Shown here: piece by piece, positions 33,409 to 57,500 of the stretch
Numbering within the stretch: the first letter of the stretch is position 1
Layout: each line of letters begins with the position of its first letter
From: Anthoceros angustus
Lineage: Eukaryota > Plantae > Anthocerotophyta
Assembly (NCBI GenBank): GCA_010909165.1
Contig: MU008225.1
Location: 99,440-163,439 of the forward strand
Length of the DNA stretch: 64,000 nucleotides
Direction: 5' to 3'
The notes under the pieces: model-generated
What the model was told of the DNA's origin: nothing
Databases searched by the model: none
What the model saw: the letters and a program-made list of their open reading frames with translations, nothing else
Translations under genes and position numbers: made by a program

Positions 33409-34685
33409 GGGATATCATACCTTCATATTTGATAATCAAACTCGTAACAGATTTGGCTTCTCCTATCAGCAACAGGCGACAAATAGAGGTGTTCTTCATA
33501 CTTGGAGCCCAACATATAAGCAAAGCGAAGTGACAGCTCTAGCTGGGTGTTCTCCAATATGCTTAGATGGCTAGTTGAAGGTCATGGCTCCATTTTAAAG
33601 CGTAGATCCAGTTATTTCCAAGTTTGTTCTCCAGTTTACCGACCGGTTTGAGGTGTGAGAATCTTGTATGTTAGATCATTCATCGTACTATGCATGAAGT
33701 TTGGACTAGCCCTATACATAGAATTAGAGCTTGCTTGATGTAGAAGGTGAAGCTAAAAACGCTGGTCCACAATGGAAGGGATTATGCAAGTGTCGGAGAC
33801 TCGGATGCCTAGGAGGCTAACAAACATCATTGATAGCATTTTTGATAAATCACAGCTTGCCCTTGAAGAAGGCGTCTTCATTGCACCTACATGCATACAC
33901 GGTTTTGCCGCCATTTCCAGTAAGTGTGAAGGAGCCTGCAGGTCAGATTATATCTACTGGTTCGCACAACTGCAGTGGAGTAGATGTTGTAAACTTAAGA
34001 GAAACTCTGCGGAATGTCCATTTCGTTGATGGAGATTTTTCAAGGACGTCACAGTGTTAGCATTGCTGATCCTATCCCTGGCGTCCGGGTTGGTGGAAAC
34101 AACCAGCGATGTCCATCATTAACAGGAACAGAAAGCTGGAAGTGGATTAAACACCTAGGCAACCAGCTGGCCTCTTTCAATCCTGGTAGACACTTTGTCG
34201 ATGACCTGTTTCGGCCCGCCATTCGTCAAAAACTGCCAGAAGGAAGGCGTGGAATGTAAACCATGGGAATAATGATCCAGCAGTGCAGCGGGTGACAGTG
34301 CGTGTAGCACAAGTTTCCTTGTCAGCGGTGGAGAGATGCGGATGTCGAGCGATATGCAGACCAGTTCGCTTAAATGCAGGTGGGTGGCTACTGTATGTAC
34401 ATACGGTACTTGGTGTTGTTCCGTTGCCAAATGGAAATGGAAGCAATTGCTGTAAACGACTGCCATTGGAAGCGCATTGAGCATTAACCAACTTCTTCGC
34501 GTTTCCGTTGATGAACACCAGCCGGGTTTTGAAAGTGAGGCGGGCTGCACTGCAACTTCTGTGTCTCAACTCCATCCAGGAAAACACATCCAGGAAACAA
34601 ATCCAGGAGACACTTGCTGGGCATGAGCTTGCGTCCCAAGGGTTCTATATCCCCTTCCCAGGCGTTTCTCATCGGACTGGGACTT

Positions 34686-36136
34686 GGTGAAGTACCTGGT
34701 AGCCACGGCTGCGAGCTAACTCGATTATGCTTTTCCGGGTAACGCCCGAGAGAATCGTACCACGCAATGCTGGAGTGACAATTGCACCATTCTGCAGTGT
34801 AACTAGGGCATCAGAGTCATGAGCTCCACAGAGCAAAAGTACCTCCACAACCATGCTGCTAAACTTCACCCTCACCTTGAACATGAAGATGTTGCACGAC
34901 GACACCTCTTCCACGTACTTGTTTTCCACAGCATCGAGGTAGAGTACGTCAGAATACCCTTTCCCTTTGCTGCCAACTGTGTCTTCAAAACCTGTAAGAT
35001 TAGGGCGATAAGTGAGGCACTAAACATATCAGGGGACTGTCGCACTACCACGAGCGGTTCGGATGAAATCTTACAGGAGCATAGTTGCCTATCGTTTTCA
35101 CCCCACCAGTTCCTCCAGGTGCGGCTCGATGGTAGAATTCTTCCACCTTGAGTGAAATCGGTGCCAGACCTTCCTAACATAAGGTGTAAAGAAGACAGTA
35201 TTAAGCTATGCAGGCAGACTTTAGTGCAGAAGGTGACTTCCTTCTCAAAGAATCGACCAAGTGAACCCGGCAGTCCAAGGAATGGATATGCCACCAAAGG
35301 GCCTAAAGCTTACCTTGAAATAATTGCCAACTGGAGACACGTAAATGACGAAGGTGTACTCGCTTGCGGAGCCAACCCCAGAACAGCTCCAGTTCCAAGA
35401 AGAAGGGGTCTAATGTACAAAGAGCCTTTGCCTGTGGGAGGAATCTGTTCAACAGCGCAAGCCCACTAATTACCATCAATCAGGCAATGGCCTCACCATT
35501 GAGAAATGCCACATTATATAAGAAGATTAACATACCCAGCGCTTATTTGCGAGCACGGCCTCCTTCACCCCGTTCACAAAGGCATCCACTGAAGGTGCGG
35601 GCATACTGAGTCTGTCAGCACCAAGTTGCATGCGAAGAGCATTTTCCTCTGGCCTGAACAATAGAATCTGCCCACTCTCAGTCCTGTAGGCTTTCAGGCC
35701 CTCAAACAAACCCTGCAGTCAAGAAAAGCGCCATAGTCGATTCAGGCTCAAGGATTACAAGCCGAAACCCTTCCATACCATTAGAAAAACGACACTGTGC
35801 GGGAAAAAGACCAAATCAACCACACAAGTACAGTCCAGGACGCTGCCCGTAATACCTGCCCGTAATTCAACACTGCTGCTGACGGACTCATTTCCAAATT
35901 ACCGAAAGGCAACAATTCACCCTTCTGCCAATGCCCGTTAGCATCATACTTCATAACGTACATGCGATCAGTCGGTCGGATTCCAAACCCTAGATTGTCC
36001 ACATCAATGCCTGAAAACGCATCCAGGTCACTGGAATAGGCCACACATCCCTCAGGGCACATCAACGGATGCAGCAAACCAAAACTGTATGACGTGAACA
36101 ACCAACACTATCCATCCAGCTGCTGACAACAAAGGC
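34686..36136 (-). pseudogene. BCAT: Internal, intron-containing duplicate of BCAT (copy of 27375-28831), lacking both ends
   Basis: Co-linear with 27375-28831. Five small deletions (6 nt total, four in homopolymers) were seen and no substitutions were noticed. Confidence 0.88.
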
Positions 36137-36300
36137 TGGGGCCCTTTCCTCACCATTGACGGCCAGCACCATACCCAAGTAGCGCAAGCAACCACGGCCC
36201 CAAAAGAACACCACTATTAAGCGCCCTCGCCCTCGATCAGACCTGGGATGGGTGTCCTTACATCATCTACTACATAGTACAAAGCCTTAGCCTTAGCCTT
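36137..36300 (+). mobile_element. 5S-rRNA-derived element (SINE3/Cassandra-like Pol III internal promoter), inverted relative to the array; copy 1
   Basis: 36199-36258 aligns ungapped to the 5S internal control region (46/60): TTAAGCGCCCT A-box, GATCAG, CTGGGATGGGTG C-box. 3' tail AAAGCCTTAGCCTTAGCCTTGG. Confidence 0.6.
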
Positions 36301-36900
36301 GGCTGCCGGCAGCCCGGCCCCGAGTCATTCTTTGTGACGGCGTGTGTGTGACGCTTTTGTGGGGCCCGGGTCATTCTTTGTGACGGCGTGTGTGACGCTT
36401 TTGTTGAGGGTGATAAAAGTGGAGGGCGCAGAAATGCCTTGAAGAAAGGGTGATAAAAGTGGAGGGTGGGGCAGAAATGCCTTGAATAAAGAAAGGGTGA
36501 TACAAGTGGAGGGTGGGGCAGGAAATGCCTTGAATAAAGGGTGATAAAAGTGGAGGCAGGACATGAAATACTTTGAATAAAGGGTGATAAAAGTGGAGGG
36601 TGATTGGATTATGTAGGCAATAAACGGGTGATTGGATTATGTAGGCAATAAATGGGTGATTGAATTATGTAGGCAGCAAAAGGTACTTCAATTCTCTAGG
36701 ATCAGCAAATGGTGATTCAATTCTAGGAATGAGCTGGGTTTGGGTGCCATATAGTGTGTGATGTAGGGAAGTAGGAGTTGGGTTTCATTTTATTTATTCA
36801 TAGGCATGGATTTTATTCATAGAGGTGTGAGGTGTGTGATGTGGGCAGGACATGGGAGTTGGGTTTTGTTTTATCCATGAAGCTTTCAAAGAGGAGAGAA

Positions 36901-36994
36901 AGGGTGCAGCACCGGACTTCCGGAGGTCACCCATCCAGTACTGATCCGCCCAAGGGCGCTTAACTGCGGAGTTCGATGGGATCTCGACCGCACC
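36901..36994 (-). rRNA. 5S rRNA: 5S rRNA copy with apparent internal deletion near the 5' end
   Basis: Matches the 38671-38788 copy but lacks most of the CATACCAGGGCTACTACACC segment. Confidence 0.7.
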
Positions 36995-37669
36995 ACGTGT
37001 ACCAAGGGCGTCCACGTGGAGCAACACGTGCTGGCATCCGCCTTGGCCGCCGGCAGCCTGCCCCGAGGTCATTCTTTGTGACGGCGTGTGTGTGACGCTT
37101 TTGTGGGGCCCGGGGTCATTCTTTGTGACGGCGTGTGTGTGTGACGTTTTCTTTTGTTGAGGGTGATAAAAAGTGGAGGGCGCGGCAAGAAATGCCTTGA
37201 AGAAAGGGTGATAAAAGTGGAGGGTGGGGCAGGAAATGCCTTGAATAAAGAAAGGGTGATACAAGTGGAGGGTGGGGCGGGAAATGCCTTGAATAAAGGG
37301 TGATAAAAGTGGAGGGCAGGACATGAAATACTTTGAATAAAGGGTGATAAAAGTGGAGGGTGATTGGATTATGTAGGCAATAAACGGGTGATTGGATTAT
37401 GTAGGCAATAAATGGGTGATTGAATTATGTAGGCAGCAAAAGGTACTTCAATTCTCTAGGATCAGCAAATGGTGATTCAATTCTCTAGGAATGAGCTGGG
37501 TTTGGGTGCCATATAGTGTGATGTAGGGAGGAAGTAGGAGTTGGGTTTGGGTTTCATTTTATTTATTCATAGGCATGGATTTTATTCATAGAGGTGTGAG
37601 GTGTGTGATGTGGGCAGGACATGGGAGTTGGGTTTTGTTTTATCCATGAAGCTTTCAAAGAGGAGAGAA

Positions 37670-37780
37670 AGGGTGCAGCACCGGACTTCCGGAGGTCACC
37701 CATCCAGTACTGATCCGGCCCAAGGGCGCTTAACTGCGGAGTTCGATGGGATCCGTGTAGTAGCCTGGTATGACCGCACC
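37670..37780 (-). rRNA. 5S rRNA: 5S rRNA copy (single-base indels)
   Basis: Co-linear with the intact copy; differs by 1-nt deletions, mostly in homopolymers. Confidence 0.85.
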
Positions 37781-37864
37781 ACGTGTACCAAGGCGTCCAC
37801 GTGGAGCAACACGTGCTGGCATCCGCCTTGGCCGCCGGCAGCCCGGCCCCGAGGGTCATTCTTT

Positions 37865-38009
37865 ATTGACGGCCAGCACCATACCCAAGTAGCGCAAGCA
37901 ACCACGGCCCCAAAGAACACCACTATTAAGCGCCCTCGCCCTCGATCAGACCTGGGATGGGTGTCCTTACATCATCTACTACATAGTACAAAGCCTTAGC
38001 CTTAGCCTT
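37865..38009 (+). mobile_element. 5S-derived inverted element, copy 2 (5'-truncated)
   Basis: Matches 36155-36300 except one A; flanked by a ~40-bp direct repeat of spacer sequence. Confidence 0.5.
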
Positions 38010-38670
38010 GGCCGCCGGCAGCCCGGGCCCCCGAGGGGTCATTCTTTGTGACGGCGTGTGTGTGTGACGTTTTGTGGGGCCCGGGGTCATTCTTTGTGAC
38101 GGCGTGTGTGTGACGCTTTTGTTGAGGGTGATAAAAAGTGGAGGGCGCGGCAGGAAATGCCTTGAAGAAAGGGTGATAAAAGTGGAGGGTGGGGCAGGAA
38201 ATGCCTTGAATAAAGAAAGGGTGATACAAGTGGAGGGTGGGGCGGGAAATGCCTTGAATAAAGGGTGATAAAAGTGGAGGCGGGGACATGAAATACTTTG
38301 AATAAAGGGTGATAAAAGTGGAGGGTGATTGGATTATGTAGGCAATAAGCGGGTGATTGGATTATGTAGGCAATAAATGGGTGATTGAATTATGTAGGCA
38401 GCAAAAGGTACTTCAATTCTCTAGGATCAGCAAATGGTGATTCAATTCTCTAGGAATGAGCTGGGTTTGGGTGCCATATAGTGTGTGATGTAGGGAGGGA
38501 AGTAGGAGTTGGGTTTGGGTTTCATTTTATTTATTCATAGAGGTGTGATGTAGGGAGGGAAGTAGGAGTTGGGTTTTGTTTTATTCATAGAGGTGTGAGG
38601 TGTGTGATGTGGGCAGGGACATGGGAGTTGGGTTTTGTTTTATCCATGAAGCTTTCAAAGAGGAGAGAAA

Positions 38671-38788
38671 AGGGTGCAGCACCGGGACTTCCCGGGAGGT
38701 CACCCATCCCAGTACTGATCCGGCCCAAGGGCGCTTAACTGCGGAGTTCTGATGGGATCCGGTGTAGTAGCCCTGGTATGACCGCACC
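38671..38788 (-). rRNA. 5S rRNA: 5S rRNA, best-preserved copy (118 nt) followed by a TTTT Pol III terminator
   Basis: Reverse complement reads GGTGCGGTCATACCAGGGCTACTACACCGGATCCCATCAGAACTCCGCAGTTAAGCGCCCTTGGGCCGGATCAGTACTGGGATGGGTGACCTCCCGGGAAGTCCCGGTGCTGCACCCT. Helix I (GGTGCGG/CTGCACC), A-box and C-box are intact. Confidence 0.95.
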
Positions 38789-38824
38789 ACGTGTACCAAG
38801 GGCGTCCACGTGGACCAACACGTG
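38788..38824 (-). promoter_or_regulatory. 5S upstream flank with three CACGTG motifs and no TATA-like element (repeated in most units)
   Basis: CACGTG at 38788-38793, 38807-38812 (inside palindrome GTCCACGTGGAC) and 38819-38824. Confidence 0.5.
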
Positions 38825-39463
38825 CTGGCATCCGCCTTGGCCGCCGGCAGCCCGGGCCCCCGAGGGGTCATTCTTTGTGACGGCGTGTGTGTGTGACGTT
38901 TTGTGGGGCCCGGGGTCATTCTTTGTGACGGCGTGTGTGTGTGACGTTTTGTTGAGGGTGATAAAAAGTGGAGGGCGCGGCAGGAAATGCCTTGAAGAAA
39001 GGGTGATAAAAGTGGAGGGTGGGGCAGGAAATGCCTTGAATAAAGAAAGGGTGATACAAGTGGAGGGTGGGCGGAAATGCCTTGAATAAAGGGTGATAAA
39101 AGTGGAGGCGGGGACATGAAATACTTTGAATAAAGGGTGATAAAAGTGGAGGGTGATTGGATTATGTAGGCAATAACGGGTGATTGGATTATGTAGGCAA
39201 TAAATGGGTGATTGAATTATGTAGGCAGCAAAAGGTACTTCAATTCTCTAGGATCAGCAAATGGTGATTCAATTCTCTAGAATGAGCTGGGTTTGGGTGC
39301 CATATAGTGTGTGTGATGTAGGGAGGAAGTAGGAGTTGGGTTTGGGTTTCATTTTATTTATTCATAGGCATGGATTTTATTCATAGAGGTGTGAGGTGTG
39401 TGATGTGGGCAGGGACATGGAGTTGGGTTTTGTTTTATCCATGAAGCTTTCAAGAGGAGAGAA

Positions 39464-39572
39464 AGGGTGCAGCACCGGACTTCCGGAGGTCACCCATCCC
39501 AAGATCCGGCCCAAGGGCGCTTAACTGCGGAGTTCTGATGGGATCCGTGTAGTAGCCTGGTATGACCGCACC
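39464..39572 (-). rRNA. 5S rRNA: 5S rRNA copy
   Basis: Co-linear with the intact copy; small indels around CAGTACTG. Confidence 0.8.
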
Positions 39573-40236
39573 ACGTGTACCAAGGGCGTCCACGTGGAGC
39601 AACACGTGCTGGCATCCGCCTTGGCCGCCGGCAGCCCGGGCCCCCGAGGGGTCATTCTTTGTGACGGCGTGTGTGTGTGACGTTTTGTGGGGCCCGGGGT
39701 CATTCTTTGTGACGGCGTGTGTGTGTGACGTTTTGTTGAGGGTGATAAAAGTGGAGGCGGAAATGCCTTGAAGAAAGGGTGATAAAAGTGGAGGGTGGGG
39801 CAGAAATGCCTTGAATAAAGAAAGGTGATACAAGTGGAGGGTGGGGCGGAAATGCCTTGAATAAAGGGTGATAAAAGTGGAGGCGGGACATGAAATACTT
39901 TGAATAAAGGGTGATAAAAGTGGAGGGTGATTGGATTATGTAGGCAATAAACGGGTGATTGGATTATGTAGGCAATAAATGGGTGATTGAATTATGTAGG
40001 CAGCAAAAGGTACTTCAATTCTCTAGGATCAGCAAATGGTGATTCAATTCTCTAGGAATGAGCTGGGTTTGGGTGCCATATAGTGTGTGATGTAGGGAGG
40101 AAGTAGGAGTTGGGTTTGGGTTTCATTTTATTTATTCATAGGCATGGATTTTATTCATAGAGGTGAGGTGTGTGATGTGGGCAGGGACATGGGAGTTGGG
40201 TTTTGTTTTATCCATGAAGCTTCAAAGAGGAGAGAA

Positions 40237-40349
40237 AGGGTGCAGCACCGGACTTCCGGAGGTCACCCATCCCAAGACTGATCCGCCCAAGGGCGCTTAA
40301 CTGCGGAGTTCTGATGGGATCCGGTGTAGTAGCCTGGTATGACCGCACC
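40237..40349 (-). rRNA. 5S rRNA: 5S rRNA copy
   Basis: Co-linear with the intact copy; small indels. Confidence 0.8.
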
Positions 40350-41004
40350 ACGTGTACCAAGGGCGTCCACGTGGACCAACACGTGCTGGCATCCGCCTTG
40401 GCCGGCAGCCGGCCCCGAGGGTCATTCTTTGTGACGGCGTGTGTGTGACGTTTGTGGGGCCCGGGTCATTCTTTGTGACGGCGTGTGTGTGTGGCTTTGT
40501 TGAGGGTGATAAAAGTGGAGGCGCGCAGAAATGCCTTGAAGAAAGGGTGATAAAAGTGGAGGGTGGGCAGGAAATGCCTTGAATAAAGAAAGGGTGATAC
40601 AAGTGGAGGGTGGGGCGGAAATGCCTTGAATAAAGGGTGATAAAAGTGGAGGCGGGACATGAAATACTTTGAATAAAGGGTGATAAAAGTGGAGGGTGAT
40701 TGGATTATGTAGGCAATAAACGGGTGATTGGATTATGTAGGCAATAAATGGGTGATTGAATTATGTAGGCAGCAAAAGGTACTTCAATTCTCTAGGATCA
40801 GCAAATGGTGATTCAATTCTCTAGGAATGAGCTGGGTTTGGGTGCCATATAGTGTGTGATGTAGGGAGGGAAGTAGGAGTTGGGTTTGGGTTTCATTTTA
40901 TTCATAGGCATGGATTTTATTCATAGAGGTGTGAGGTGTGTGATGTGGCAGGGACATGGGAGTTGGGTTTTGTTTTATCCATGAAGCTTTCAAAGAGGAG
41001 AGAA

Positions 41005-41117
41005 AGGGTGCAAAGACCGGACTTCCGGAGGTCACCCATCCCAAGATCGATCCGCCCAAGGGCGCTTAACTGCGGAGTTCGATGGGATCCGGTGTAGTAG
41101 CCTGGTATGACCGCACC
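41005..41117 (-). rRNA. 5S rRNA: 5S rRNA copy
   Basis: Co-linear with the intact copy; small indels and substitutions. Confidence 0.8.
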
Positions 41118-41758
41118 ACGTGTACCAAGGGCGTCCACGTGGAGCAACACGTGCTGGCATCCGCCTTGGCCGGCAGCCGCCCCGAGGGTCATTCTTTGTG
41201 ACAGGCGTGTGTGTGTGACGTTTGTGGGGCCGGGTCATTCTTTGTGACGGCGTGTGTGTGTGACGTTTTGTTGAGGTGATAAAAGTGGAGGGTGATAAAA
41301 GTGGAGGGTGATAAAAGTGGAGGGTGGGGCAGAAATGCCTTGAATAAAGAAAGGTGATACAAGTGGAGGTGGGGCGAAATGCCTTGAATAAAGGGTGATA
41401 AAAGTGGAGGCAGGACATGAAATACTTTGAATAAAGGGTGATAAAAGTGGAGGTGATTGGATTATAGGCAATAAGCGGGTGATTGGATTATGTAGGCAAT
41501 AAATGGGTGATTGAATTATGTAGGCAAAAGGTACTTCAATTCTCTAGGATCAGCAAATGGTGATTCAATTCTCTAGGAATGAGCCGGGTTTGGGTGCCAT
41601 ATAGTGTGTGATGTAGGGAGGAAGTAGGAGTTGGTTTGGGTTTCATTTTATTTATTCATAGGCATGGATTTTATTCATAGAGGTGTGAGGTGTGTGATGT
41701 GGGCGGGACATGGGAGTTGGGTTTTGTTTTATCCATGAAGCTTTCAAAGAGGAGAGAA

Positions 41759-41867
41759 AGGGTGCAGACCGGACTTCCGGAGGTCACCATCCCAGACTGA
41801 TCCGGCCCAAGGGCGCTTAACTGCGGAGTTGATGGGATCCGGTGTAGTAGCCTGGTATGACCGCACC
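41759..41867 (-). rRNA. 5S rRNA: 5S rRNA copy (about 30 further, increasingly noisy copies follow at ~0.73-kb spacing from ~43180 to ~63720)
   Basis: Co-linear with the intact copy; small indels. Confidence 0.8.
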
Positions 41868-42432
41868 ACGTGTACCAAGGCGTCCACGTGGACCAACACG
41901 TGCTGGCATCCGCCTTGGCAGCCCGGCCCCGAGGTCATTCTTGTGACGGTGTGTGTGACGTGTGTGTGTGACGTTTTGTTGAGGTGATAAAAGTGGAGGT
42001 GTGTGTGACGCTTTGTTGAGGGTGATAAAAGTGGAGGCGGGACATGAAATACTTTGAATAAAGGGTGATAAAAGTGGAGGGTGGGGCGAAATGCCTTGAA
42101 TAAAGAAAGGGTGATACAAGTGGAGGGTGGGGAAATGCCTTGAATAAAGGTGATAAAAGTGGAGGCGGGACATGAAATACTTTGAATAAAGGGTGATAAA
42201 AGTGGAGGGTGATTGGATTATGTAGGCAATAAACGGGTGATTGGATTATGTAGGCAATAAATGGGTGATTGAATTATGTAGGCAGCAAAAGGTACTTCAA
42301 TTCTCTAGGATCGGCTTTAGCCATCGCTGATTCCTATTCGTATCTGCAGTCTACATGGGGTGCGTATAGAAGAGGTCGTAATCCGACGACATAAGCGGTG
42401 GAATGCGTTCGCCCAATTGCGGAAACAAAGGC

Positions 42433-42596
42433 TGGGGCCCTTTCCTCACCATTGACGGCCAGCACCATACCCAAGTAGCGCAAGCAACCACGGCCCCAAA
42501 AGAACACCACTATTAAGCGCCCTCGCCCTCGATCAGACCTGGGATGGGTGTCCTTACATCATCTACTACATAGTACAAAGCCTTAGCCTTAGCCTT
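42433..42596 (+). mobile_element. 5S-derived inverted element, copy 3 (full length), preceded by ~110 bp of unique sequence that interrupts a spacer
   Basis: Matches 36137-36300. The upstream sequence 42313-42423 is not found elsewhere in the window. Confidence 0.55.
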
Positions 42597-45500
42597 GGCC
42601 GCCGGCAGCCGACCCCGGTCATTCTTTGTGACGCGTGTGTGTGTGACGTTTGTGGGGCCCGGGTCATTCTTTGTGACGGCGTGTGTGTGTGTGGCGTTTT
42701 GTTGAGGTGATAAAAGTGAGGCGGAAATGCCTTGAAGAAAGGGTGATAAAAGTGGAGGTGGGGCAGAAATGCCTTGAATAAAGGGTGATACAAGTGGAGG
42801 GTGGGCGGAAATGCCTTGAATAAAGGGTGATAAAAGTGGAGGCGGGACATGAAATACTTTGAATAAAGGTGATAAAAGTGGAGGGTGATTATGTAGGCAA
42901 TAAGCGGGTGATTGGATTATGTAGGCAATAAATGGGTGATTGAATTATGTAGGCAAAAGGTACTTCAATTCTCTAGGATCAGCAAATGGTGATTCAATTT
43001 CTAGGAATGAGCCGGGTTTGGGTGCCATATAGTGTGTGATGTAGGGAGGAAGTAGGAGTTGGGTTTGGGTTTCATTTTATTTATTCATAGGCATGGATTT
43101 TATTCATAGAGGTGTGAGGTGTGATGTGGGCGGGACATGGAGTTGGGTTTTGTTTTATCCATGAAGCTTTCAAAGAGGAGAGAAAGGGTGCAGACCGGAC
43201 TTCCCGGAGGTCACCCATCCCAGACTGATCCGCCCAAGGGCGCTTAACTGCGGAGTTCTGATGGGATCCCACAGTATGACCGCACCACGTACCAAGGGCG
43301 TCCACGTGAGCAACACGTCGGCATCCGCCTGCCCCGAGGTCATTCTTTGTGACGCGTGTGTGTGTGGCTTGTGGGGCCCGGGTCATTCTTTGACGGCGTG
43401 TGTGTGTGACGCTTGTTGAGGGTGATAAAAGTGGAGGGCGGCAGAAATGCCTTGAAGAAAGGGTGATAAAAGTGGAGGGTGGGGCAGAAATGCCTTGAAT
43501 AAAGAAAGGGTGATACAAGTGGAGGGTGGGGCGAAATGCCTTGAATAAAGGGTGATAAAAGTGGAGGCGACATGAAATACTTTGAATAAAGGGTGATAAA
43601 AGTGGAGGGTGATTGGATTATGTAGGCAATAAACGGGTGATTGGATTATGTAGGCAATAAATGGGTGATTGAATTATGTAGGCAGCAAAAGGTACTTCAA
43701 TTCTCTAGGATCAGCAAATGGTGATTCAATTTCTAGGAATGAGCTGGGTTTGGGTGCCATATAGTGTGTGATGTAGGGAGGAAGTAGGAGTTGGGTTTGG
43801 GTTTCATTTTATTTATTCATAGGCATGGATTTTATTCATAGAGGTGTGAGGTGTGTGATGTGGGCAGGGACATGGGAGTTGGGTTTTGTTTTATCCATGA
43901 AGCTTTCAAAGAGGAGAAAGGGTGCACCGGACTTCCGGAGGTCACCCATCCCAAGATCGATCCGCCAAGGGCGCTTAACTGAGTTCTGATGGGATCCGGT
44001 GTAGTAGCCCGGTATGACCGCACCACGTGTACCAAGGCGTCCACGTGGAGCAACACGTCTTGGCATCCGCCTTGGCCGCCGGCAGCCGGTCATTCTTTGT
44101 GACGCGTGTGTGTGTGGCTTGTGGGGCCCGGGTCATTCTTTGACGGCGTGTGTGTGTGACGCTTGTTGAGGGTGATAAAAGTGGAGGGCGGCAGAAATGC
44201 CTTGAAGAAAGGGTGATAAAAGTGGAGGGTGGGGCAGAAATGCCTTGAATAAAGAAAGGGTGATACAAGTGGAGGGTGGGGCGAAATGCCTTGAATAAAG
44301 GGTGATAAAAGTGGAGGCGACATGAAATACTTTGAATAAAGGGTGATAAAAGTGGAGGGTGATTGGATTATGTAGGCAATAAACGGGTGATTGGATTATG
44401 TAGGCAATAAATGGGTGATTGAATTATGTAGGCAGCAAAAGGTACTTCAATTCTCTAGGATCAGCAAATGGTGATTCAATTTCTAGGAATGAGCTGGGTT
44501 TGGGTGCCATATAGTGTGTGATGTAGGGAGGAAGTAGGAGTTGGGTTTGGGTTTCATTTTATTTATTCATAGGCATGGATTTTATTCATAGAGGTGTGAG
44601 GTGTGTGATGTGGGCAGGGACATGGGAGTTGGGTTTTGTTTTATCCATGAAGCTTTCAAAGAGGAGAGAAAGGGTGCAGACCGGACTTCCGGAGGTCACC
44701 CATCCCAAGATCGATCCGGCCCAAGGGCGCTTAACTGCGGAGTTCGATGGGATCCGGTATGACCGCACCACGTGTACCAAGGGCGTCCACGTGGAGCAAC
44801 ACGTCTTGTATGTAACGCATAAGCCCCAGTCATTCTTTGTGACGTGTGTGACGTTTTGTGGGGCCGGTCATTCTTTGTGACGCGTGTGTGTGTGACGCTT
44901 GTTGAGGGTGATAAAAGTGGAGGCGCAGAAATGCCTTGAAGAAAGGGTGATAAAAGTGGAGGTGGGCAGGAAATGCCTTGAATAAAGAAAGGGTGATACA
45001 AGTGGAGGGTGGGGCGGAAATGCCTTGAATAAAGGGTGATAAAAGTGAGGGCGCAGAAATGCCTTGAATAAAGGGTGATAAAAGTGAGGTGATTGGATTA
45101 TGTAGGCAATAAACGGGTGATTGATTATGTAGGCAATAAATGGGTGATTGAATTATGTAGGCAGCAAAAGGTACTTCAATTTCTAGGATCAGCAAATGGT
45201 GATTCAATTTCTAGGAATGAGCCGGGTTTGGGTGCCATAGTGTGTGATGTAGGGAGGAAGTAGAGTTGGGTTTCATTTTATTTATTCATAGCATGGATTT
45301 TATTCATAGAGGTGAGGTGTGTGATGTGGCAGACATGGGAGTTGGGTTTTGTTTTATCCATGAAGCTTCAAAGAGGAGAGAAAGGGTGCAGGGACTTCCC
45401 GGAGGTCACCCATCCCAACTGATCCGCCCAAGGGCGCTTAACTGCGGAGTTCTGATGGGATCCGGTGTAGTAGCGTGACCGCACCACGTACCAAGGGCGC

Positions 45501-48500
45501 CCACGTGGAGCAACACGTCGGCATCCGCCTTGGCCGCCGGCAGCCTGCCCCGAGGGTCATTCTTTGTGACGCGTGTGTGTGACGTTTTGTGGGGCCCGGT
45601 CATTCTTTGTGACGGCGTGTGTGTGTGGCTTTGTTGAGGGTGATAAAAGTGATAAAAGTGGAGGGCGAAATGCCTTGAAGAAAGGGTGATAAAAGTGGAG
45701 GGTGGGGCAGAAATGCCTTGAATAAAGAAAGGGTGATACAAGTGGAGGGTGGGGCGGAAATGCCTTGAATAAAGGGTGATAAAAGTGGAGGCGGGACATG
45801 AAATACTTTGAATAAAGGGTGATAAAAGTGGAGGGTGATTGGATTATGTAGGCAATAAACGGTGATTGGATTATGTAGGCAATAAATGGGTGATTGAATT
45901 ATGTAGGCAGCAAAAGGTACTTCAATTCTCTAGGATCAGCAAATGGTGATTCAATTCTCTAGGAATGAGCTGGGTTTGGGTGCCATAGTGTGTGATGTGG
46001 GAGGAAGTAGGAGTTGGGTTTGGGTTTCATTTTATTTATTCATAGGCATGGATTTTATTCATAGTGTGTGTGTGTGATGTGGGGACATGGGAGTTGGGTT
46101 TTGTTTTATCCATGAAGCTTTCAAAGAGGAGAAAGGGTGCAGACCGGACTTCCCGGAGGTCACCCATCCCAACTGATCCGCCCAAGGGCGCTTAACTGCG
46201 GAGTTCTGATGGGATCCCACAGTATGACCGCACCACGTGTACCAAGGGCGCCCACGTGGAGCAACACGTCGGCATCCGCCTTGGCCGGCAGCCCGGCCCC
46301 GAGGGTCATTCTTGTGACGTGTGTGTGACGTTTTGTGGGGCCGGGTCATTCTTTGTGACGTGTGTGTGTGGCTTTGTTGAGGGTGATAAAAGTGGAGGCG
46401 CAGAAATGCCTTGAAGAAAGGGTGATAAAAGTGGAGGTGGGGCAGAAATGCCTTGAATAAAGAAAGGGTGATACAAGTGGAGGGTGGGGCGGAAATGCCT
46501 TGAATAAAGGGTGATAAAAGTGGAGGCGGACATGAAATACTTTGAATAAAGGGTGATAAAAGTGGAGGGTGATTGGATTATGTAGGCAATAAACGGGTGA
46601 TTGGATTATGTAGGCAATAAATGGGTGATTGAATTATGTAGGCAAAAGGTACTTCAATTCTCTAGGATCAGCAAATGGTGATTCAATTCTCTAGGAATGA
46701 GCCGGGTTTGGGTGCCATATAGTGTGTGATGTAGGGAGGAAGTAGGAGTTGGGTTTGGGTTTCATTTTATTTATTCATAGGCATGGATTTTATTCATAGA
46801 GGTGTGAGGTGTGTGATGTGGGGACATGGGAGTTGGGTTTTGTTTTATCCATGAAGCTTTCAAGAGAAAGGGTGCAGACCGGACTTCGGAGGTCACCCAT
46901 CCCAAGATCGATCCGCCCAAGGCGCTTAACTGGAGTTCGATGGGATCCGTGTAGTAGCCTGGTGACCGCACCACGTGTACCAAGGGCGTCCACGTGGACC
47001 AACACGTGCTGGCATCCGCCTTGGCCGGCAGCCTGCCCCGAGGGTCATTCTTTGTGACGCGTGTGTGTGTGGCGTTTTGTGGGGCCCGGTCATTCTTGTG
47101 ACGGCGTGTGTGTGTGACGCTTTGTTGAGGTGATAAAAGTGGAGGCGCAGAAATGCCTTGAAGAAGGGTGATAAAAGTGGAGGGTGGGGGAAATGCCTTG
47201 AATAAAGAAAGGGTGATACAAGTGGAGGGTGGGGCGGAAATGCCTTGAATAAAGGGTGATAAAAGTGGAGGCAGGACATGAAATACTTTGAATAAAGGGT
47301 GATAAAAGTGGAGGTGATTGGATTATGTAGGCAATAAATGGGTGATTGGATTATGTAGGCAAAAGGTACTTCAATTCTCTAGGATCAGCAAATGGTGATT
47401 CAATTCTCTAGGAATGAGCTGGGTTTGGGTGCCATATAGTGTGTGATGTGGGAGGAAGTAGGAGTTGGGTTTGGGTTTCATTTTATTTATTCAGGCATGG
47501 ATTTTATTCATAGAGGTGTGAGGTGTGTGATGTGGGCGGGACATGGGAGTTGGGTTTTGTTTTATCCATGAAGCTTCAAAGAGGAGAAAGGGTGCAGACC
47601 GGACTTCCGGAGGTCACCCATCCCAACTGATCCGCCCAAGGGCGCTTAACTGCGGAGTTCTGATGGGATCCGGTGTAGTAGCCTGGTGACCGCACCACGT
47701 ACCAAGGGCGCCCACGTGTACCAAGGGCGTCACGTGACGGCGTGTGTGTGTGGCTTTGTGGGGCCCGGGTCATTCTTTGTGACGCGTGTGTGTGACGCTT
47801 TGTTGAGGGTGATAAAAGTGGAGGCGCAGAAATGCCTTGAAGAAAGGGTGATAAAAGTGGAGGTGGGGCAGAAATGCCTTGAATAAAGAAAGGGTGATAC
47901 AAGTGGAGGGTGGGGGAAATGCCTTGAATAAAGGGTGATAAAAGTGGAGGCGACATGAAATACTTTGAATAAAGGGTGATAAAAGTGGAGGGTGATTGGA
48001 TTATGTAGGCAATAAACGGTGATTGGATTATGTAGGCAATAAATGGGTGATTGAATTATGTAGGCAGCAAAAGGTACTTCAATTCTCTAGGATCAAATGG
48101 TGATTCAATTCTCTAGGAATGAGCTGGGTTTGGGTGCCATAGTGTGTGATGTAGGGAGGAAGTAGGAGTTGGGTTTGGGTTTCATTTTATTTATTCATAG
48201 GCATGGATTTTATTCATAGAGGTGTGAGGTGTGTGATGTGGGCAGGGACATGGGAGTTGGGTTTTGTTTTATCCATGAAGCTTTCAAAGAGGAGAGAAAG
48301 GGTGCAGCACCGACTTCCGGAGGTCACCCATCCCAAGATCGATCCGCCGGGCGCTTAACTGGAGTTCTGATGGGATCCGGTGTAGTAGCCCTGGTATGAC
48401 CGCACCACGTGTACCAAGGGCGTCCACGTGGACCAACACGTCGGCATCCTTGGCCGGCAGCCCGAGGTCATTCTTTGTGACGGCGTGTGTGGCGTTTGTG

Positions 48501-51500
48501 GGGCCCGGGTCATTCTTTGTGACGCGTGTGTGTGTGGCTTTGTTGAGGGTGATAAAAGTGGAGGCGGACATGAAATACTTTGAATAAAGGGTGATAAAAG
48601 TGGAGGGTGGGGCGAAATGCCTTGAATAAAGAAAGGGTGATACAAGTGGAGGTGGGGAAGGAAATGCCTTGAATAAAGGGTGATAAAAGTGGAGGCGGAC
48701 ATGAAATACTTTGAATAAAGGTGATAAAAGTGGAGGGTGATTGGATTATGTAGGCAATAAACGGGTGATTGGATTATGTAGGCAATAAATGGGTGATTGA
48801 ATTATGTAGGCAAAAGGTACTTCAATTTCTAGGATCAGCAAATGGTGATTCAATTTCTAGGAATGAAATGGGTTTGGGTGCCATATAGTGTGTGATGTAG
48901 GGAGGAAGTAGGAGTTGGGTTTGGGTTTCATTTTATTTATTCATAGGCATGGATTTTATTCATAGAGGTGTGAGGTGTGTGATGTGGGGGACATGGGAGT
49001 TGGGTTTTGTTTTATCCATGAAGCTTTCAAGAGGAGAGAAAAGGGTGCAAGGACTTCGGAGGTCACCCATCCCGATCGATCCGCCCAAAATGCTGAGTTC
49101 GATGGGATCCGGTGTAGTAGCCCTGCGTGTGCAAGAGCACGTGGAGCAACACGTCGGCATCCTTGGCCGCCGGCAGCCCGAGGGTCATTCTTTGTGACGT
49201 GTGTGTGGCGTTTGTGGGGCCGGGTCATTCTTTGTGACGTGTGTGTGTGACGTTTTGTTGAGGGTGATAAAAGTGGAGGCGCAGAAATGCCTTGAAGAAA
49301 GGGTGATAAAAGTGGAGGGTGGGGCGAAATGCCTTGAATAAAGAAAGGGTGATACAAGTGGAGGGTGGGGCGAAATGCCTTGAATAAAGGGTGATAAAAG
49401 TGGGCGGACATGAAATACTTTGAATAAAGGGTGATAAAAGTGGAGGGTGATTGGATTATGTAGGCAATAAGGGTGATTGGATTATGTAGGCAATAAATGG
49501 GTGATTGAATTATGTAGGCAGCAAAAGGTACTTCTCTAGGATCAGCAAATGGTGATTCAATTCTCTAGGAATGAGCTGGGTTTGGTGCCATATAGTGTGT
49601 GTGATGTAGGGAGGAAGTAGGAGTTGGGTTTGGGTTTCATTTTATTTATTCATAGCGATTTATTCATAGAGGTGTGAGGTGTGTGATGTGGCAGGACATG
49701 GGAGTTGGGTTTGTTTTATCCATGAAGCTTTCAAAGAGGAGAGAAAAGGGTGCAGCACCGGACTTCCGGAGGTCACCCATCGATCGATCCGCCCAAGGGC
49801 GCTTAACTGAGTTGATGGGATCCGGTATGACCGCACCACGTGTACCAAGGGCGTCCACGTGGAGCAACACGTCGGCATCCGCCTTGGCCGCGGCCGAGAC
49901 TAGAGGTCATTCTTTGTACGGCGTGTGTGTGTGGCGTTTGTGGGGCCCGGGTCATTCTTTGTGACGGCGTGTGTGTGTGGCGTTTTGTTGAGGTGATAAA
50001 AGTGGAGGGGCGGAAATGCCTTGAAGAAAGGTGATAAAAGTGGGGTGGGGCGGAAATGCCTTGAATAAAGAAAGGGTGATACAAGTGGAGGGTGGGGGAA
50101 ATGCCTTGAATAAAGGGTGATAAAAGTGGAGGCGGACATGAAATACTTTGAATAAAGGGTGATAAAAGTGGAGGGTGATTGGATTATGTAGGCAATAAAC
50201 GGGTGATTGGATTATGTAGGCAATAAATGGGTGATTGAATTATGTAGGCAGCAAAAGGTACTTCAATTCTCTAGGATCAACAAATGGTGATTCAATTCTC
50301 TAGGAATGAGGGTTTGGGTGCCATAGTGTGTGATGTAGGGAGGAAGTAGGAGTTGGGTTTGGGTTTCATTTTATTTATTCATAGGCATGGATTTTATTCA
50401 TAGAGGTGAGGTGTGTGATGTGGGCAGGGACATGGAGTTGGGTTTGTTTTATCCATGAAGCTTCAAAGAGGAGAGAAAAGGCAGACCGGACTCCGGAGGT
50501 CACCCATCCCAAGACTGATCCGGCCCAAGGGCGCTTAACTGCGGAGTTCGATGGGATCCGTGGTAGCCCAGATGACCGCACCACGTACCAAGGGCGTCCA
50601 CGTGACCACGCGCCGGCATCCGCTTCGCCGGCAGCCTGCCCCGAGGGTCATTCGACTGTGTGTGACGTTTTGTGGGGCCCGGTCATTCTTTGTGACTGTG
50701 TGTGACGTTTTGTTGAGGGTGATAAAAGTGGGGCGCTTGCCTTGAAGAAAGGTGATAAAAGTGGAGCAGAATGCCTTGAATAAAGAAAGGTGATACAAGT
50801 GGAGTGGGCGAAATGCCTTGAATAAAGGTGATAAAAGTGGAGGCAGGACATGAAATACTTTGAATAAAGGGTGATAAAAGTGGAGGGTGATTGGATTATG
50901 TAGGCAATAACGGTGATTGGATTATGTAGGCAATAAATGGGTGATTGAATTATGTAGGCAGCAAAAGGTACTTCAATCTAGGATCAAATGGTGATTCAAT
51001 TCTCTAGGAATGATGGGTTTGGTGCCATAGGTGTGATGTAGGGAGGAAGTAGGAGTTGGGTTTGGGTTTCATTTTATTTATTCATAGGCATGGATTTTAT
51101 TCATAGAGGTGAGGTGTGTGATGTGGGCAGGGACATGGGAGTTGGGTTTTGTTTTATCCATGAAGCAAAGAGGAGAGAAAGGGTGCAGACCGGACTTGAG
51201 GTCACCCATCCAAGATCGATCCGCCCAAGGGCGCTTAATCTTAAGGGGATCCGGTGAAGATGCCGCACCACGTGTACCAAGGGCGTCCACGTGAGCAACA
51301 CGTCGGCATCCGCCTTGCCGCCGGTGGCCCGAGGGTCATTCTGGCGTGTGTGTGTGTGACGCTTAGGGGCCCGGGTCATTCTGTGACGGCGCAGTGTGTG
51401 ACGCTTTGTTGAGGGTGATAAAAGTGGAGGGCGCGCAGAAATGCCTTGAAGAAAGGGTGATAAAAGTGGAGGGTGGGGCAGAAATGCCTTGAATAAAGAA

Positions 51501-54500
51501 AGGGTGATACAAGTGGAGGGTGGGGCGGAAATGCCTTGAATAAAGGGTGATAAAAGTGAGGGCAGACATGAAATACTTTGAATAAAGGGTGATAAAAGTG
51601 AGGGTGATTGGATTATGTAGGCAATAAACGGGTGATTGGATTATGTAGGCAATAAATGGGTGATTGAATTATGTAGGCAGCAAAAGGTACTTCAATTTCT
51701 AGGATCAGCAAATGGTGATTCAATTTCTAGGAATGAGCTGGGTTTGCGCCATAGTGTGTGATGTAGGGAGGAAGTAGGAGTTTTTGGGTTTCATTTTATT
51801 TATTCAAATGGATTTTATTCATAGAGGTGTGAGGTGTGTGATGTGGGCAGGGACATGGGAGTTGGGTTTTGTTTTATCCATGAAGCTTTCAAAGAGGAGA
51901 GAAAGGGTGCAGACCGGACTTGGAGGTCACCCATCCCGATCGATCCGGCCCAAGGGCGCTTAACTGCGGAGTTCTGATGGGATCCGGTAGTAGCCTGGTA
52001 TGACCGCACCACGTGTACCAAGGGCGTCCACGTGGAGCAACACGTCTTGGCATCCTTGGCCATGACCCAGATAGAGGTCATTCTTTGTGACGTGTGTGTG
52101 TGTGACGTTTTGTGGGGCCCGGTCATTCTTTGTGACGGCGTGTGTGTGTGGCTTTGTTGAGGTGATAAAAGTGGAGGCGCAGAAATGCCTTGAAGAAAGG
52201 GTGATAAAAGTGGAGGAGGTGGGGCAGAAATGCCTTGAATAAAGAAAGGGTGATACAAGTGGAGGGTGGGCGGGGCCAGATAAAGGGTGATAAGTGGAGG
52301 CGGACATGAAATACTTTGAAAGGGTGATAAAAGTGGAGGGTGATTAATGTAGGCAAACGGGTGATTGGATTATGTAAATAAATGGGTGATTGAATTATGT
52401 AGGCAGAAAAGGTACAATTTCTAGGATCAGAAATGGTGATTCAATTTAGGAATGAGCTGGTTTGCCATAGTGTGTGATGTAGGGAGGAAGTAGGAGTTGG
52501 GTTTCATTTTATTTATTCATAGGCATGGATTTTATTCATAGAGGTGAGGTGTGATGTGGGAGGACATGGGAGTTGGGTTTTGTTTTATCCATGAAGCAAA
52601 GAGGAGAGAAAAGGTGCACGGACTTCGGAGGTCACCCATCCCAAGACTGATCCGCCCAAGGGCGCTTAACTGCGGAGTTCTGATGGGATCCGTGTAGCTG
52701 AAACCGCACCACGTACCAAGGCGTCCACGTGAGCAACACGTCGGCATCCGCCTTGCCGGCAGCCGGCCCCGAGGGGTCGACGCAGGTGACGCTTGTGGGT
52801 CATTCTTGTGACGCAGGTGTGTGACGTTTTGTTGAGGGTGAAAAGTGGAGGCACAGAAATGCCTTGAAGAAAGGGTGATAAAAGTGGAGGGTGGGGCAGG
52901 AAATGCCTTGAATAAAGAAAGGGTGATACAAGTGGAGGGGAAGGAAATGCCTGAATAAAGGGTGATAAAAGTGGAGGGTGACATGAAATACTTTGAATAA
53001 AGGGTGATAAAAGTGAGGGTGATTGATTATGTAGGCAAACGGGTGATTGGATTATGTAGGCAATAAATGGGTGATTGAATTATGTAGCAGAAAAGGTACT
53101 TCAATTCTAGGATCAGCAAATGGTGATTCAATTTCTAGGAATGAGCTGGGTTTGGTGCCATATAGTGTGATGTAGGGAGGAAGTAGGAGTTGGGTTTGGG
53201 TTTCATTTTATTTATTCAGGCATGGATTTTATTCAGAGGTGGAGGTGATGCAGAGGACATGGAGTTGGGTTTTGTTTTATCCATGAAGCTTAAAGAGGAG
53301 AGAAAGGGTGCAAGACCGATTTCCCGGAGGTCACCCATCCAGACCGATCCGCCCAAGGCGCCAAGATGAGTTCTGATGGGATCCCATGACCGCACCACGT
53401 ACCAAGCCCACGTGAGCAACACGTCGGCATCCGCCTGGCCGGAGAGCTTGCCCAGGGGCCCAGACGGCGTGTGTGACGCAGGGGCCCGGGTCATTTTGTG
53501 ACGGCGTGTGTGACGCTTGTTGAGGTGATAAAAGTGAGGCGCGGCAGAAATGCCTTGAAGAAAGGGTGATAAAAGTGGAGGTGGGGCAGAAATGCCTTGA
53601 ATAAAGAAAGGGTGACAAGTGAGGTGGGCGAAATGCCTTGAATAAAGGGTGATAAAAGTGAGGCGTGACATGAAATACTTGAATAAAGGTGATAAAAGTG
53701 GAGGGTGATTGATTATGTAGGCAATAAACGGTGATTGGATTATGTAAATGGGTGATTGAATTATGTAGGCAAAAGGTACTTCAATTTCTAGGATCAGCAA
53801 ATGGTGATTCAATTCTCTAGGAATGAGGGTTTGGGTGCCATATAGTGTGTGATGTAGGGAGGAAGTAGGAGTTGGGTTTGGGTTTCATTTTATTTATTCA
53901 TAGGCATGGATTTTATTCATAGAGGTGTGAGGTGTGTGATGTGGGCAGGGACATGGGAGTTGGGTTTTGTTTTATCCATGAAGCTTTCAAAGAGGAGAGA
54001 AAGGGTGCAGACCGGACTTCCCGGAGGTCACCATCCAAGATCGATCCGCCCAAGGCGCCGCTGGAGTTGATGGGATCCCACGCCTGGCCGCACCACGTGT
54101 ACAAGGCGTCCACGTGGAGCAACACGTCGGCATCCGCCTTGGCCGGCGGCCGGGCCCCGAGGGTCATTCTTTGTGACAATTGTGACGCGTGTGTGTGTGG
54201 CTTTGTGGGGCCCGGGTCATTCTTTGTGACGTGTGTGTGACGTTTTGTTGAGGGTGATAAAAGTGGGGCGCGGCGAAATGCCTTGAAGAAAGGGTGATAA
54301 AAGTGGAGGGTGGGGCGAAATGCCTTGAATAAAGAAAGGGTGATACAAGTGGAGGGTGGAAATGCCTTGAATAAAGGGTGATAAAAGTGAGGGCGGGGAC
54401 ATGAAATACTTTGAATAAAGGGTGATAAAAGTGGAGGGTGATTGGATTATAGGCAATAAACGGTGATTGGATTATGTAGGCAATAAATGGGTGATTGAAT

Positions 54501-57500
54501 TATGTAGGCAGCAAAAGGTACTTCAATTTCTAGGATCAGCAAATGGTGATTCAATTTCTAGGAATGAGCCGGGTTTGGGTGCCATATAGTGTGTGATGTA
54601 GGGAGGGAGGAGTTGGTTGGGTTTCATTTATTTATTCATAGGCATGGATTTTATTCATAGAGGTGTGAGGTGTGTGATGTGGGCAGGACATGGAGTTGGG
54701 TTTTGTTTTATCCATGAAGCTTTCAAAGAGGAGAGAAAAGGTGCGACCGGACTTCCGGAGGTCACCATCCCAAGATCGATCCGCCCAAGGGCGCAATCGG
54801 AGTTGATGGGATCTGGTATGGCCGCACCACGTGTACAAGGCGTCCGTGAGCAACACGTCGGCATCCGCCAACCGCCGGCCCCAGGGTCATTCTTGTGTGG
54901 CGTGTGTGTGTGGCTTTTAGGGGCCCGGTCATTCTTTGTGACTGTGTGTGTGGCTTTGTTGAGGGTGATAAAAGTGGAGGCGCAGAAATGCCTTGAAGAA
55001 AGGGTGATAAAAGTGGAGGTGGGGCAGAAATGCCTTGAATAAAGAAAGGGTGATACAAGTGGAGGGTGGAAATGCCTTGAATAAAGGGTGATAAAAGTGG
55101 AGGCAGGACATGAAATACTTTGAATAAAGGGTGATAAAAGTGGAGGGTGATTGGATTATGTAGGCAATAAACGGTGATTGGATTATAGGCAATAAATGGG
55201 TGATTGAATTATGTAGGCAAAAACAATTTCTAGGATCAGCAAATGGTGATTCAATTTCTAGGAATGAGGGTTTGGGTGCCATATAGTGTGTGATGTAGGG
55301 AGAGTAGGAGTTGGGTTTGGGTTTCATTTATTTATTCATAGGCATGGATTTTATTCATGAGGTGTGAGGTGTGTGATGTGGGCGGGGACATGGAGTTGGG
55401 TTTTGTTTTATCCATGAAGCTTCAAAGAGGAGAGAAAGGGTGCAGACCGGACTTCCGGAGGTCACCCATCCCGATCTTGATCCGCCCAAGGGCGCTTAAC
55501 TGCGGAGTTGATGGGATCCGGTATGGCCGCACCACGTGTACCAAGGCGTCCGTGAGCAACACGTCGGCATCCGCCTTGCCGGCAGCCGAGAGGTCATTCT
55601 TTTGAAGATGTGTGTGTGGTTTTGTGGGGCCGGTCATTCTGTGACGGCGTGTGTGTGGCTTTGTTGAGGTGATAAAAGTGGAGGCGGCCTTGAAGAAAGG
55701 GTGATAAAAGTGGATGAATGCCTTGAATAAAGAAAGGGTGATACAAGTGGAGGTGGGGCAAATGCCTTGAATAAAGGGTGATACAAGTGGAGGGTGGGAA
55801 ATGCCTTGAATAAAGGGTGATAAAAGTGGAGGCAGGACATGAAATACTTTGAATAAAGGGTGATAAAAGTGGAGGGTGATTGGATTATGTAGGCAATAAC
55901 GGGTGATTGGATTATGTAGGCAATAAATGGGTGATTGAATTATGTAGGCAGCAAAAGGTACTTCAATTCTCTAGGATCAGCAAATGGTGATTCAATTCTC
56001 TAGGAATGAGCTGGGTTTGGTGCCATATAATGTGTGATGTAGGGAGGAAGTAGGAGTTGGGTTTGGGTTTCATTTTATTTATTCAAGGCATGGATTTTAT
56101 TCATAGAGGTGTGAGGTGTGTGATGTAAGGACATGGAGTTGGGTTTTGTTTTATCCATGAAGCTTTCAAGAGAGAAAGGGTGCAGACCGGACTTCCGGAG
56201 GTCACCCTCAATCGATCCGCCCAAGGGCGCAATCACTCGAGTTGATGGGATCCGGTATGGCCGCACCACGTGTACCAAGGCACGAGCAACACGTCGGCAT
56301 CCGCCTTGGCAGCCCTCCGAGGGTCATTCTGACGGCGTGTGTGTGTGACGCTTGTGGGGCCGGTCATTCACGGCGTGTGTGTGTGGCTTTGTTGAGGGTG
56401 ATAAAAGTGGAGGAGAAATGCCTTGAAGAAAGGGTGATAAAAGTGGGTGGGGCAGAAATGCCTTGAATAAAGAAAGGTGACCGGACTTCGGGAGGTCACC
56501 CATCCCAAGATCGATCCGCCCAAGGGCGCTTAACTGCGGAGTTCGATGGGATCCGGTATGGCCGCACCACGTGTACCAAGGCGTCCACGTGGAGCAACAC
56601 GTCTTGGCATCCGCCTTGGCAGCTGACCAGACCCCAGGGTCATTCTTTGACGGCGTGTGTGTGTGACGTTTTGTGGGGCCCTCATTCTTTGTGGCCAGGC
56701 GTGTGTGGCGTTTGTTGAGGGTGATAAAAGTGGGCGCGGTGCCTTGAAGAAAGGGTGATAAAAGTGGAGGCGGTGAAATGCCTTGAATAAAGAAAGGGTG
56801 ATAAAAGTGGAGGGTGGGGCGAAATGCCTTGAATAAAGGGTGATAAAAGTGGAGGCGACATGAAATACTTTGAATAAAGGTGATAAAAGTGGAGGGTGAT
56901 TGGATTATGTAGGCAATAAACGATTGGATTATGTAGGCAATAAATGGGTGATTGAATTATGTAGCAAAAGGTACTTCAATTCTCTAGGATCAAAAATGGT
57001 GATTCAATTCTCTAGGAATGAGGGTTTGGGTGCCATATAGTGTGTGTGATGTAGGGAGGAAGTAGGAGTTGGGTTTGGGTTTCATTTTATTTATTCATAG
57101 GCATGGATTTTATTCATAGAGGTGTGATGTGGGCGGGGACATGGGAGTTGGGTTTTGTTTTATCCATGAAGCTTTCAAAGAGGAGAGAAAAGTTACTCGG
57201 ACTTCGGAGGTCAATCTTGATCCGCCCAAGGGCGCTTAACTGCGGAGTTCGATGGGATCCGGTATGGCCGCACCACGTGTACCAAGGGCGCCCACGTGAG
57301 CAACACGTCCGGCATCCGCCTTGGCCGGCAGCCTGCCCCGAGGGGTCATTCTTGTGACGGTGTGTGTGTGACGTTTTGTGGGGCCCGGGTCATTCTTTGT
57401 GACGTGTGTGGCTTTGTGGGGCCCGGGTCATTCTTTGTGACGGCGTGTGTGTGGCTTTGTTGAGGTGATAAAAGTGGGCGAAATGCCTAAAGGGTGATAA

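Follow-up and report, generated by a model that had tools for sequence, protein, structure and literature searches.

The 64,000-nucleotide (nt) window analysed here, positions 99,440 to 163,439 of contig MU008225.1 (assembly GCA_010909165.1) of the hornwort Anthoceros angustus, takes in the edge of a 5S ribosomal DNA (rDNA) array whose first units harbour three copies of an inserted element, each with a fragment of 5S sequence inside it. A preliminary description had read the first of these copies as a 5S-derived retroelement of the short interspersed nuclear element (SINE) type, inserted at one site of the 5S spacer. The 5S fragment, its orientation opposite to the array (fragment on the plus strand, array on the minus strand) and the single site all stand, whereas the identity as a SINE does not. 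With about even confidence, we instead regard the copies as left-truncated 3′ ends of one longer, low-copy long interspersed nuclear element (LINE) that is associated with the 5S array, partly reshaped through microhomology. The features concerned are as follows.

36296..64000, minus strand: 5S rDNA array, unit ~784 bp, ~36 units in the window
36137..36295, plus strand: copy 1, at the array edge, 159 nt
36284..36302, plus strand: tail and fixed right junction, GCCTTA GCCTTA then GCCTTGG; also at 37993 and 42580
37825..37864, plus strand: left half of the spacer duplication flanking copy 2, 40 nt; the right half is 38005-38047, 43 nt
37865..38004, plus strand: copy 2, 140 nt, extra DNA within an otherwise complete unit
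42313..42591, plus strand: copy 3, the longest in the window, 279 nt, replacing ~360 nt of a unit including its 5S gene
42495..42554, plus strand: 5S-like block of copy 3, 5S nt 34-93, 46/60

The left ends of the copies are nested (279, 159 and 140 nt) and the right end is constant. ATTGACGG recurs at 36155, 37865 and 42451, the cores are identical save for the length of one A run, and each copy closes with GCCTTA GCCTTA before passing into the GCCTTGG of the spacer (at 36296, 38005 and 42592), 44 nt upstream of a 5S gene start in every case. The merger of all three copies with the spacer at a fixed site is thus as first described, and so is the short tandem tail, whose two 6-nt units overlap the target by GCCTT.

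The left junctions differ from copy to copy. Copy 3 meets the spacer within an 8-nt overlap, CTAGGATC (42305-42312), which is common to both. Copy 2 has the short shared sequence TGACGGC near its junction and is flanked by a direct duplication in which the spacer's first 40-43 nt are repeated, the halves differing in single-base run lengths only. Copy 1 abuts a fragment of a neighbouring gene:

34683..36136, minus strand: partial aminotransferase gene duplicate, 99.5% to 27372-28831, a 1.46-kb direct duplication of exon pieces

This duplicate breaks off exactly at the start of copy 1, which is also the edge of the 5S array, and the junction falls within a 9-nt overlap, AACAAAGGC (36128-36136), in which the element and the end of the duplicate agree. 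Those nine letters recur where the original gene segment ends (28823-28831) and again within copy 3 (42424-42432). A 9-bp direct repeat, ACAAAGGCT/ACAAAGCCT, had been proposed to bracket the core; it is at chance level, with ~1.5 such pairs matching at 8/9 positions estimated for the region. Nor is it a target duplication, because its left member occurs also in the duplicated gene (28823-28831) and in copy 3 (42425) and is missing from copy 2.

All three copies lie within the first 8 of ~36 units, an arrangement expected in 56/7140 cases if they were placed at random (p ~0.008), and they are separated from one another by whole array units. Neither blastn nor nhmmer found a copy outside the array in the 36 kb of non-array sequence of the window.

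Each copy carries a block related to the 5S internal control region. In copy 1, positions 36199-36258 align without gaps to the reverse complement of 38697-38756, corresponding to 5S nt 34-93, with 46/60 identities (77%); both this alignment and the conserved runs listed within it were reproduced. The block of copy 2 sits at ~37908-37966. The local alignment score of the copy 1 block, 50, stands far above that of dinucleotide shuffles (16.3 ± 2.35; 0/2000 reach 50; z ~14), and the antisense score is 14. The block spans most of the A box, the intermediate element (IE) and part of the C box, and C-box positions 94-97 are gone. When boxes are taken in 5S numbering as 50-64 (A box), 67-72 (IE) and 80-93 (C box), 29/35 box positions match, and mismatches fall at 6/35 positions inside the boxes versus 8/25 outside (one-sided Fisher p=0.15), so the earlier statement that only the promoter boxes were retained does not follow from the alignment. 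The 14 mismatches to the host 5S gene comprise 10 transversions and 4 transitions, and such an excess of transversions would not usually result if a host gene had simply decayed.

On both sides the likeness ends abruptly. The 64 nt to the left resemble 5S nt 1-33 at chance level (p=0.77), the entire alignment being the CATACC hexamer that had been listed among the conserved blocks. To the right, the 86 nt following the block bear no likeness to 5S nt 94-119 and the downstream spacer (p=0.95), in agreement with the view that everything after the C box has been replaced. The partial, low-scoring hit that had been predicted for the Rfam 5S model (RF00001) did not appear, with no match at E up to 10 in 36100-36330 or on the plus strand of 34000-64000. 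The only Rfam match on the element alone, a 16-bit minus-strand match to the archaeal snoRNA sR30, was taken as chance. The RNA of the 285-nt long-form stretch 42312-42596 is predicted to fold no better than shuffles on either strand (z +0.41 and +0.88). Another 5S-like stretch lies at 5740-5960 on the minus strand (GGAACTCCAC ... CTACTGGGATGGGG), followed by unrelated sequence; it is a different sequence and aligns with the element at the C-box motif only.

The 5S piece came as part of the insert, since the 5S likeness is limited to nt 34-93 and since the unit that holds copy 2 still has a gene and a spacer of its own. It is clearly cargo of the insert and not a broken or decayed host gene of the array. 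Inverted 5S pseudogenes, such as those of tilapia, likewise place an inverse 5S-like piece inside a 5S array. Here, by contrast, that piece is 60 nt within a longer foreign segment, in an insert flanked by a target duplication, with the ten-to-four ratio of transversions to transitions given above.

Evidence for a longer parent form came from four read sets compared with 42150-42750 (601 letters): X1 (organism A, DNA, share 0.53) and X2 (same sample, guessed to be RNA), and, out of many organism-B runs of small share, X10 (organism B, DNA) and X12 (organism B, guessed to be RNA). One X1 contig of 3878 nt ends in 179 nt that equal 42305-42483 with zero mismatches and runs leftward for at least 3.7 kb as non-spacer sequence, at a depth of 15.4 versus 200-3200 for spacers. 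The left part of the element therefore belongs to a low-copy sequence of at least 3.9 kb. A start of the element at 36129, as first placed, cannot be upheld in the face of this continuation, and copy 3 already reaches 42313, 112 nt further left than the start claimed for copy 1. The proposed ~170-bp unit with a 5S head dissolves in the same way: nt 1-33 are missing, there are three different left ends, and the long form measures at least 3.9 kb.

The right half of the element has a counterpart in the second organism. In a 106-nt X10 contig (depth 82), a C-box-like motif (CCTGGGATGGGG) is separated by ~15 nt from a 44-nt stretch ~91% like 42567-42610 and covering the element end, the tail and the first 19 nt of 'spacer' (GCCTTGGCCGCC...), after which unrelated AT-rich sequence begins. 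In this contig, too, the 5S likeness stops near nt 93. The sequence between the C-box-like motif and the tail has diverged and the order of the parts is retained; because a C-box-like motif at the right distance is too unlikely by chance, organism B has a homologous right half. The 30-mers at the loose ends of the X1 and X10 contigs are absent from the window.

Other look-ups returned little. The RNA-guess runs X2 and X12 gave no contigs on the element in 42150-42750, a result that is weak either way. Exact look-ups of open reading frames (ORFs) at the edge of the long form and a word search with a 58-amino-acid ORF found no match, and the one frame open for 39 codons up to 42392 is within chance. 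Metagenome scans with an exact 38-mer of the core had no match. A 22-mer spanning tail and junction had four (L001-L004), which were rejected as Ala/Lys-rich coding repeats, unrelated to the element and matched by chance.

The parent sequence is most likely a retrotransposon without long terminal repeats (non-LTR), that is, a LINE. The copies combine a constant 3′ end and variable 5′ truncation with a short tandem tail and with either a target-site duplication (copy 2, 40-43 nt) or a target-site deletion (copy 3, ~360 nt), all of which are traits of LINEs. The duplication at copy 2 and the nested left ends look like the outcome of retroelement insertion, and the 60-nt 5S piece would accordingly be cargo within the 3′ region of the element, neither an RNA polymerase III (Pol III) head nor a decayed array gene. 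We infer from such traits the LINE identity, insertion by way of RNA and the number of independent insertions among the copies.

Insertion would have occurred by target-primed reverse transcription at the one site in the spacer, lying upstream of a 5S gene by 44 nt, with the element oriented opposite to that gene. A bottom-strand nick directly left of GCCTTGG would expose a 3′ end (...CCAAGGC) able to pair with the GCCUUA repeats in which the element RNA ends and to prime cDNA synthesis. An early stop, or joining of the cDNA end through microhomology, may then have set the nested 5′ ends at 279, 159 and 140 nt. At copy 2, a second-strand break 40-43 nt downstream would give the flanking duplication, and at copy 3 a break ~360 nt upstream would delete the 5S gene. 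The left junction of copy 1 with the gene-duplicate fragment looks like a rearrangement through microhomology, made at the same time or afterwards. It is quite possible that the history is mixed, one retro-insertion having been succeeded by local rearrangements, and this explanation takes that in.

Our confidence in a LINE origin goes no higher because of observations that weigh against it. No reverse transcriptase (RT) or endonuclease sequence is seen, the body of the long form lying outside the window. Overlaps of 8 and 9 nt, as at the left junctions here, are longer than is usual at LINE 5′ junctions and are typical of template switching. The junction of copy 1 coincides with the end of the gene duplicate. 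The clustering of copies in the first 8 units fits local copying as well as it fits poor purging at the array edge, although rare variants may have been lost from the noisy interior of the assembly. Finally, copy 2 is derivable from a copy-3-like unit by one ~515-nt deletion. To these can be added the lack of a dispersed copy in the non-array part of the window. X1 contigs on 42486-42611 are also lacking, and the three in-array left junctions were not seen in X1 contigs, though such holes prove nothing.

Comparison with known elements places the insert close to, and yet apart from, the rDNA-specific LINEs. LINEs of the R2 type, with a restriction-like endonuclease (RLE), combine a fixed target in an rRNA gene array with copies that are often 5′-truncated, that vary at the 5′ junction and that duplicate or delete a little of the target. 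The fixed target in a tandem rRNA gene array, the 5′-truncated copies and the target duplication or deletion are shared by the insert described here; R2, however, targets the 28S gene. The Mutsu elements of zebrafish, 5S rRNA gene-specific LINEs of the Tx1 group in the L1 superfamily, are similarly non-LTR elements tied to 5S arrays, with a sequence-specific site and interrupted or variant units (PMC5340908). Mutsu has a poly(A) end and goes into the 5S gene itself, in its 5′ half, whereas the element here sits 44 nt upstream of the gene, within the spacer, with the opposite orientation, a (GCCTTA)2 tail and a 5S fragment in its 3′ region. The host, moreover, is a plant.

Among plant retroelements, Cassandra terminal-repeat retrotransposons in miniature (TRIMs) contain a segment resembling the 5S promoter and sometimes occur in tandem arrays (PMC10946416). 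The 5S piece of Cassandra sits in paired long terminal repeats (LTRs) around a primer-binding site (PBS) and a polypurine tract. The check for a Cassandra-type structure revealed no paired LTRs near the copies and no tRNA-Met PBS within 5 kb of any copy. The same 2024 review, which records transposable elements inserted into the 5S spacers of plants, names no 5S-derived SINE from plants, nor does it list a plant case of the 5S site-specific retroelements that are known from animals through Mutsu (PMC10946416). If the LINE reading is true, the insert would represent a plant element that targets a fixed place in the 5S spacer and has part of the 5S promoter within its 3′ end, and it would bear on the origin of 5S-headed SINEs and on target finding by rDNA-specific elements. 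If it is a rearrangement scar instead, it would document how microhomology drives turnover where a 5S array ends, an ordinary process.

Such a scar is the tentative alternative that survives best. Template switching through microhomology might have placed at the array edge a copy of a piece from a unique locus, either an array flank or another site, in which an old 5S fragment was present, with subsequent spread and trimming by unequal crossing-over and deletions; the common right junction would then be inherited from one event. This non-mobile origin is a serious rival because of the junction overlaps, the coincidence with the gene duplicate, the clustering of the copies and the deletion route to copy 2. 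All junctions lie in or next to a shared short sequence (CTAGGATC, AACAAAGGC, TGACGGC or GCCTT), the junction of copy 1 is the end of the 1.46-kb duplicate, the copies sit together in the first 8 units and are identical, and in X1 the long form follows a single path, of low depth. It requires, however, two separate deletions that both ended inside the 140-nt left part of the element, and it leaves the short tandem tail unexplained. It also fails to account for the order of motif, tail and junction in the second organism, where the intervening sequence has diverged.

A more elaborate form of the LINE reading, in which the LINE homes to one 5S-spacer site and bears, within its own 3′ region, part of the 5S internal control region, appears improbable to us. 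Under that form, this part could recruit TFIIIA or TFIIIC and so steer integration to 5S chromatin, and Pol III could fire within the LINE 3′ end and yield short RNAs that bear the LINE recognition tail; copy 2, with its left end 11 nt before the expected +1, would be one of these products, a SINE caught at birth.

The geometry of the boxes bears on any such transcript. Type-1 internal promoters set the start ~50 nt upstream of the A box. The expected +1 of the element, equivalent to 5S nt 1, is 36166 in copy 1 and 42462 in copy 3, and the left ends lie 11 nt (copy 2), 29-38 nt (copy 1) and 149 nt (copy 3) upstream of the expected +1. There is no T4 within the element and the first on the plus strand after it is at 36355, so a transcript from the internal promoter would be ~190 nt.

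That the insert is itself a short SINE-like retroposon with a 5S promoter, whose internal boxes direct Pol III transcription and which targets the 5S spacer, we consider very unlikely. The stretch from A box through IE to C box is 77% kept, the element is free of T4, with the first one 205 nt after ATTGACGG in copies 1 and 2, and just 11 nt separate the left end of copy 2, which has a flanking duplication, from the expected +1 downstream. Against this, 5S nt 1-33 are absent (p=0.77); with only nt 34-93 present, there is no 5S head. Measured from the expected +1, the upstream reach is 29-38 nt in copy 1, 149 nt in copy 3 and at least 3800 nt in the X1 contig, and the sparing of the boxes is not significant (p=0.15). 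The element also lacks the CACGTG motifs seen upstream of the genuine 5S genes of the host, has no contigs in the RNA-guess runs and has no dispersed copies in the window. SINE3, AmnSINE1 and other 5S-derived SINEs resemble it: behind the 5S internal control region (A box, IE, C box) they continue with unrelated sequence and close with a short-repeat tail of LINE type. Those SINEs, however, are short, dispersed units that open with the 5S head at the start site of Pol III, whereas here nt 1-33 are missing, the copies reach far upstream and, within the window, they are found in the array only.

Domestication as a boundary element, with the TFIIIA/TFIIIC-type boxes acting as a chromatin barrier or as the driver of an antisense RNA into the spacer at the array edge that could feed silencing of the array, would suit copies that lie at and near that edge and a C-box-like motif and tail that are kept in a second organism. 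That conservation is equally expected of the 3′ end of a mobile element, no transcript was found on the element in the RNA-guess runs, and neither strand folds unusually (z +0.41 and +0.88); we judge this reading highly improbable. Just as improbable is an artefact of assembling a noisy long-read array: the consensus is rich in errors (unit identity of 85-90% deeper in the array, 1-nt indels relative to X1) and X1 contigs do not show the in-array junctions, but three precise junctions in short overlaps are unlike mis-joins, the three copies agree with one another, the left half is matched base for base in X1, and the right half with its junction recurs in a contig of another organism.

The array itself is uneven. 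The sole clean 5S gene of the whole window by Rfam score is 38671-38789 on the minus strand (108.9 bits), and Rfam searches of the whole window in gathering and E-value modes placed 5S genes on the minus strand only. Gene scores drop from 109 to below 40 bits deeper in the array (36296-64000). Identity among units falls to 85-90% further inside, the differences being mainly in the lengths of single-base runs, and X1 short-read contigs differ from the window by 1-nt indels at 42632-42648. For these reasons the weak 5S genes look like long-read consensus noise rather than pseudogenes. The relatedness of the units around the copies, tried as a clue to their history, was uninformative, since the differences are mostly run-length noise of this kind.

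The 44 nt upstream of the clean 5S gene (38790-38833, for this minus-strand gene) contain CACGTG and CCACGTGG motifs and, in contrast to Arabidopsis 5S genes as described, have no TATA-like box near -28. The unit to the left of copy 3 (41911-42312) has one fewer GTCATTCTTTGTGACGG(GT)n sub-repeat than other units, which have two at the start of the spacer.

To the left of the array lie a gene for a 2-hydroxyacid dehydrogenase and a TRAPPC11/Gryzun-like gene. The duplicate that borders copy 1 derives from a minus-strand gene at ~27355-29400 for a class IV (branched-chain type) aminotransferase, with PF01063 on one exon. The 1.46-kb direct repeats were also considered as the ends of an LTR retrotransposon, which was rejected as they consist of aminotransferase exons and lack TG..CA ends. 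Between both aminotransferase segments, 32856-33412 is a short, non-coding tandem duplication with a period of ~273 bp.

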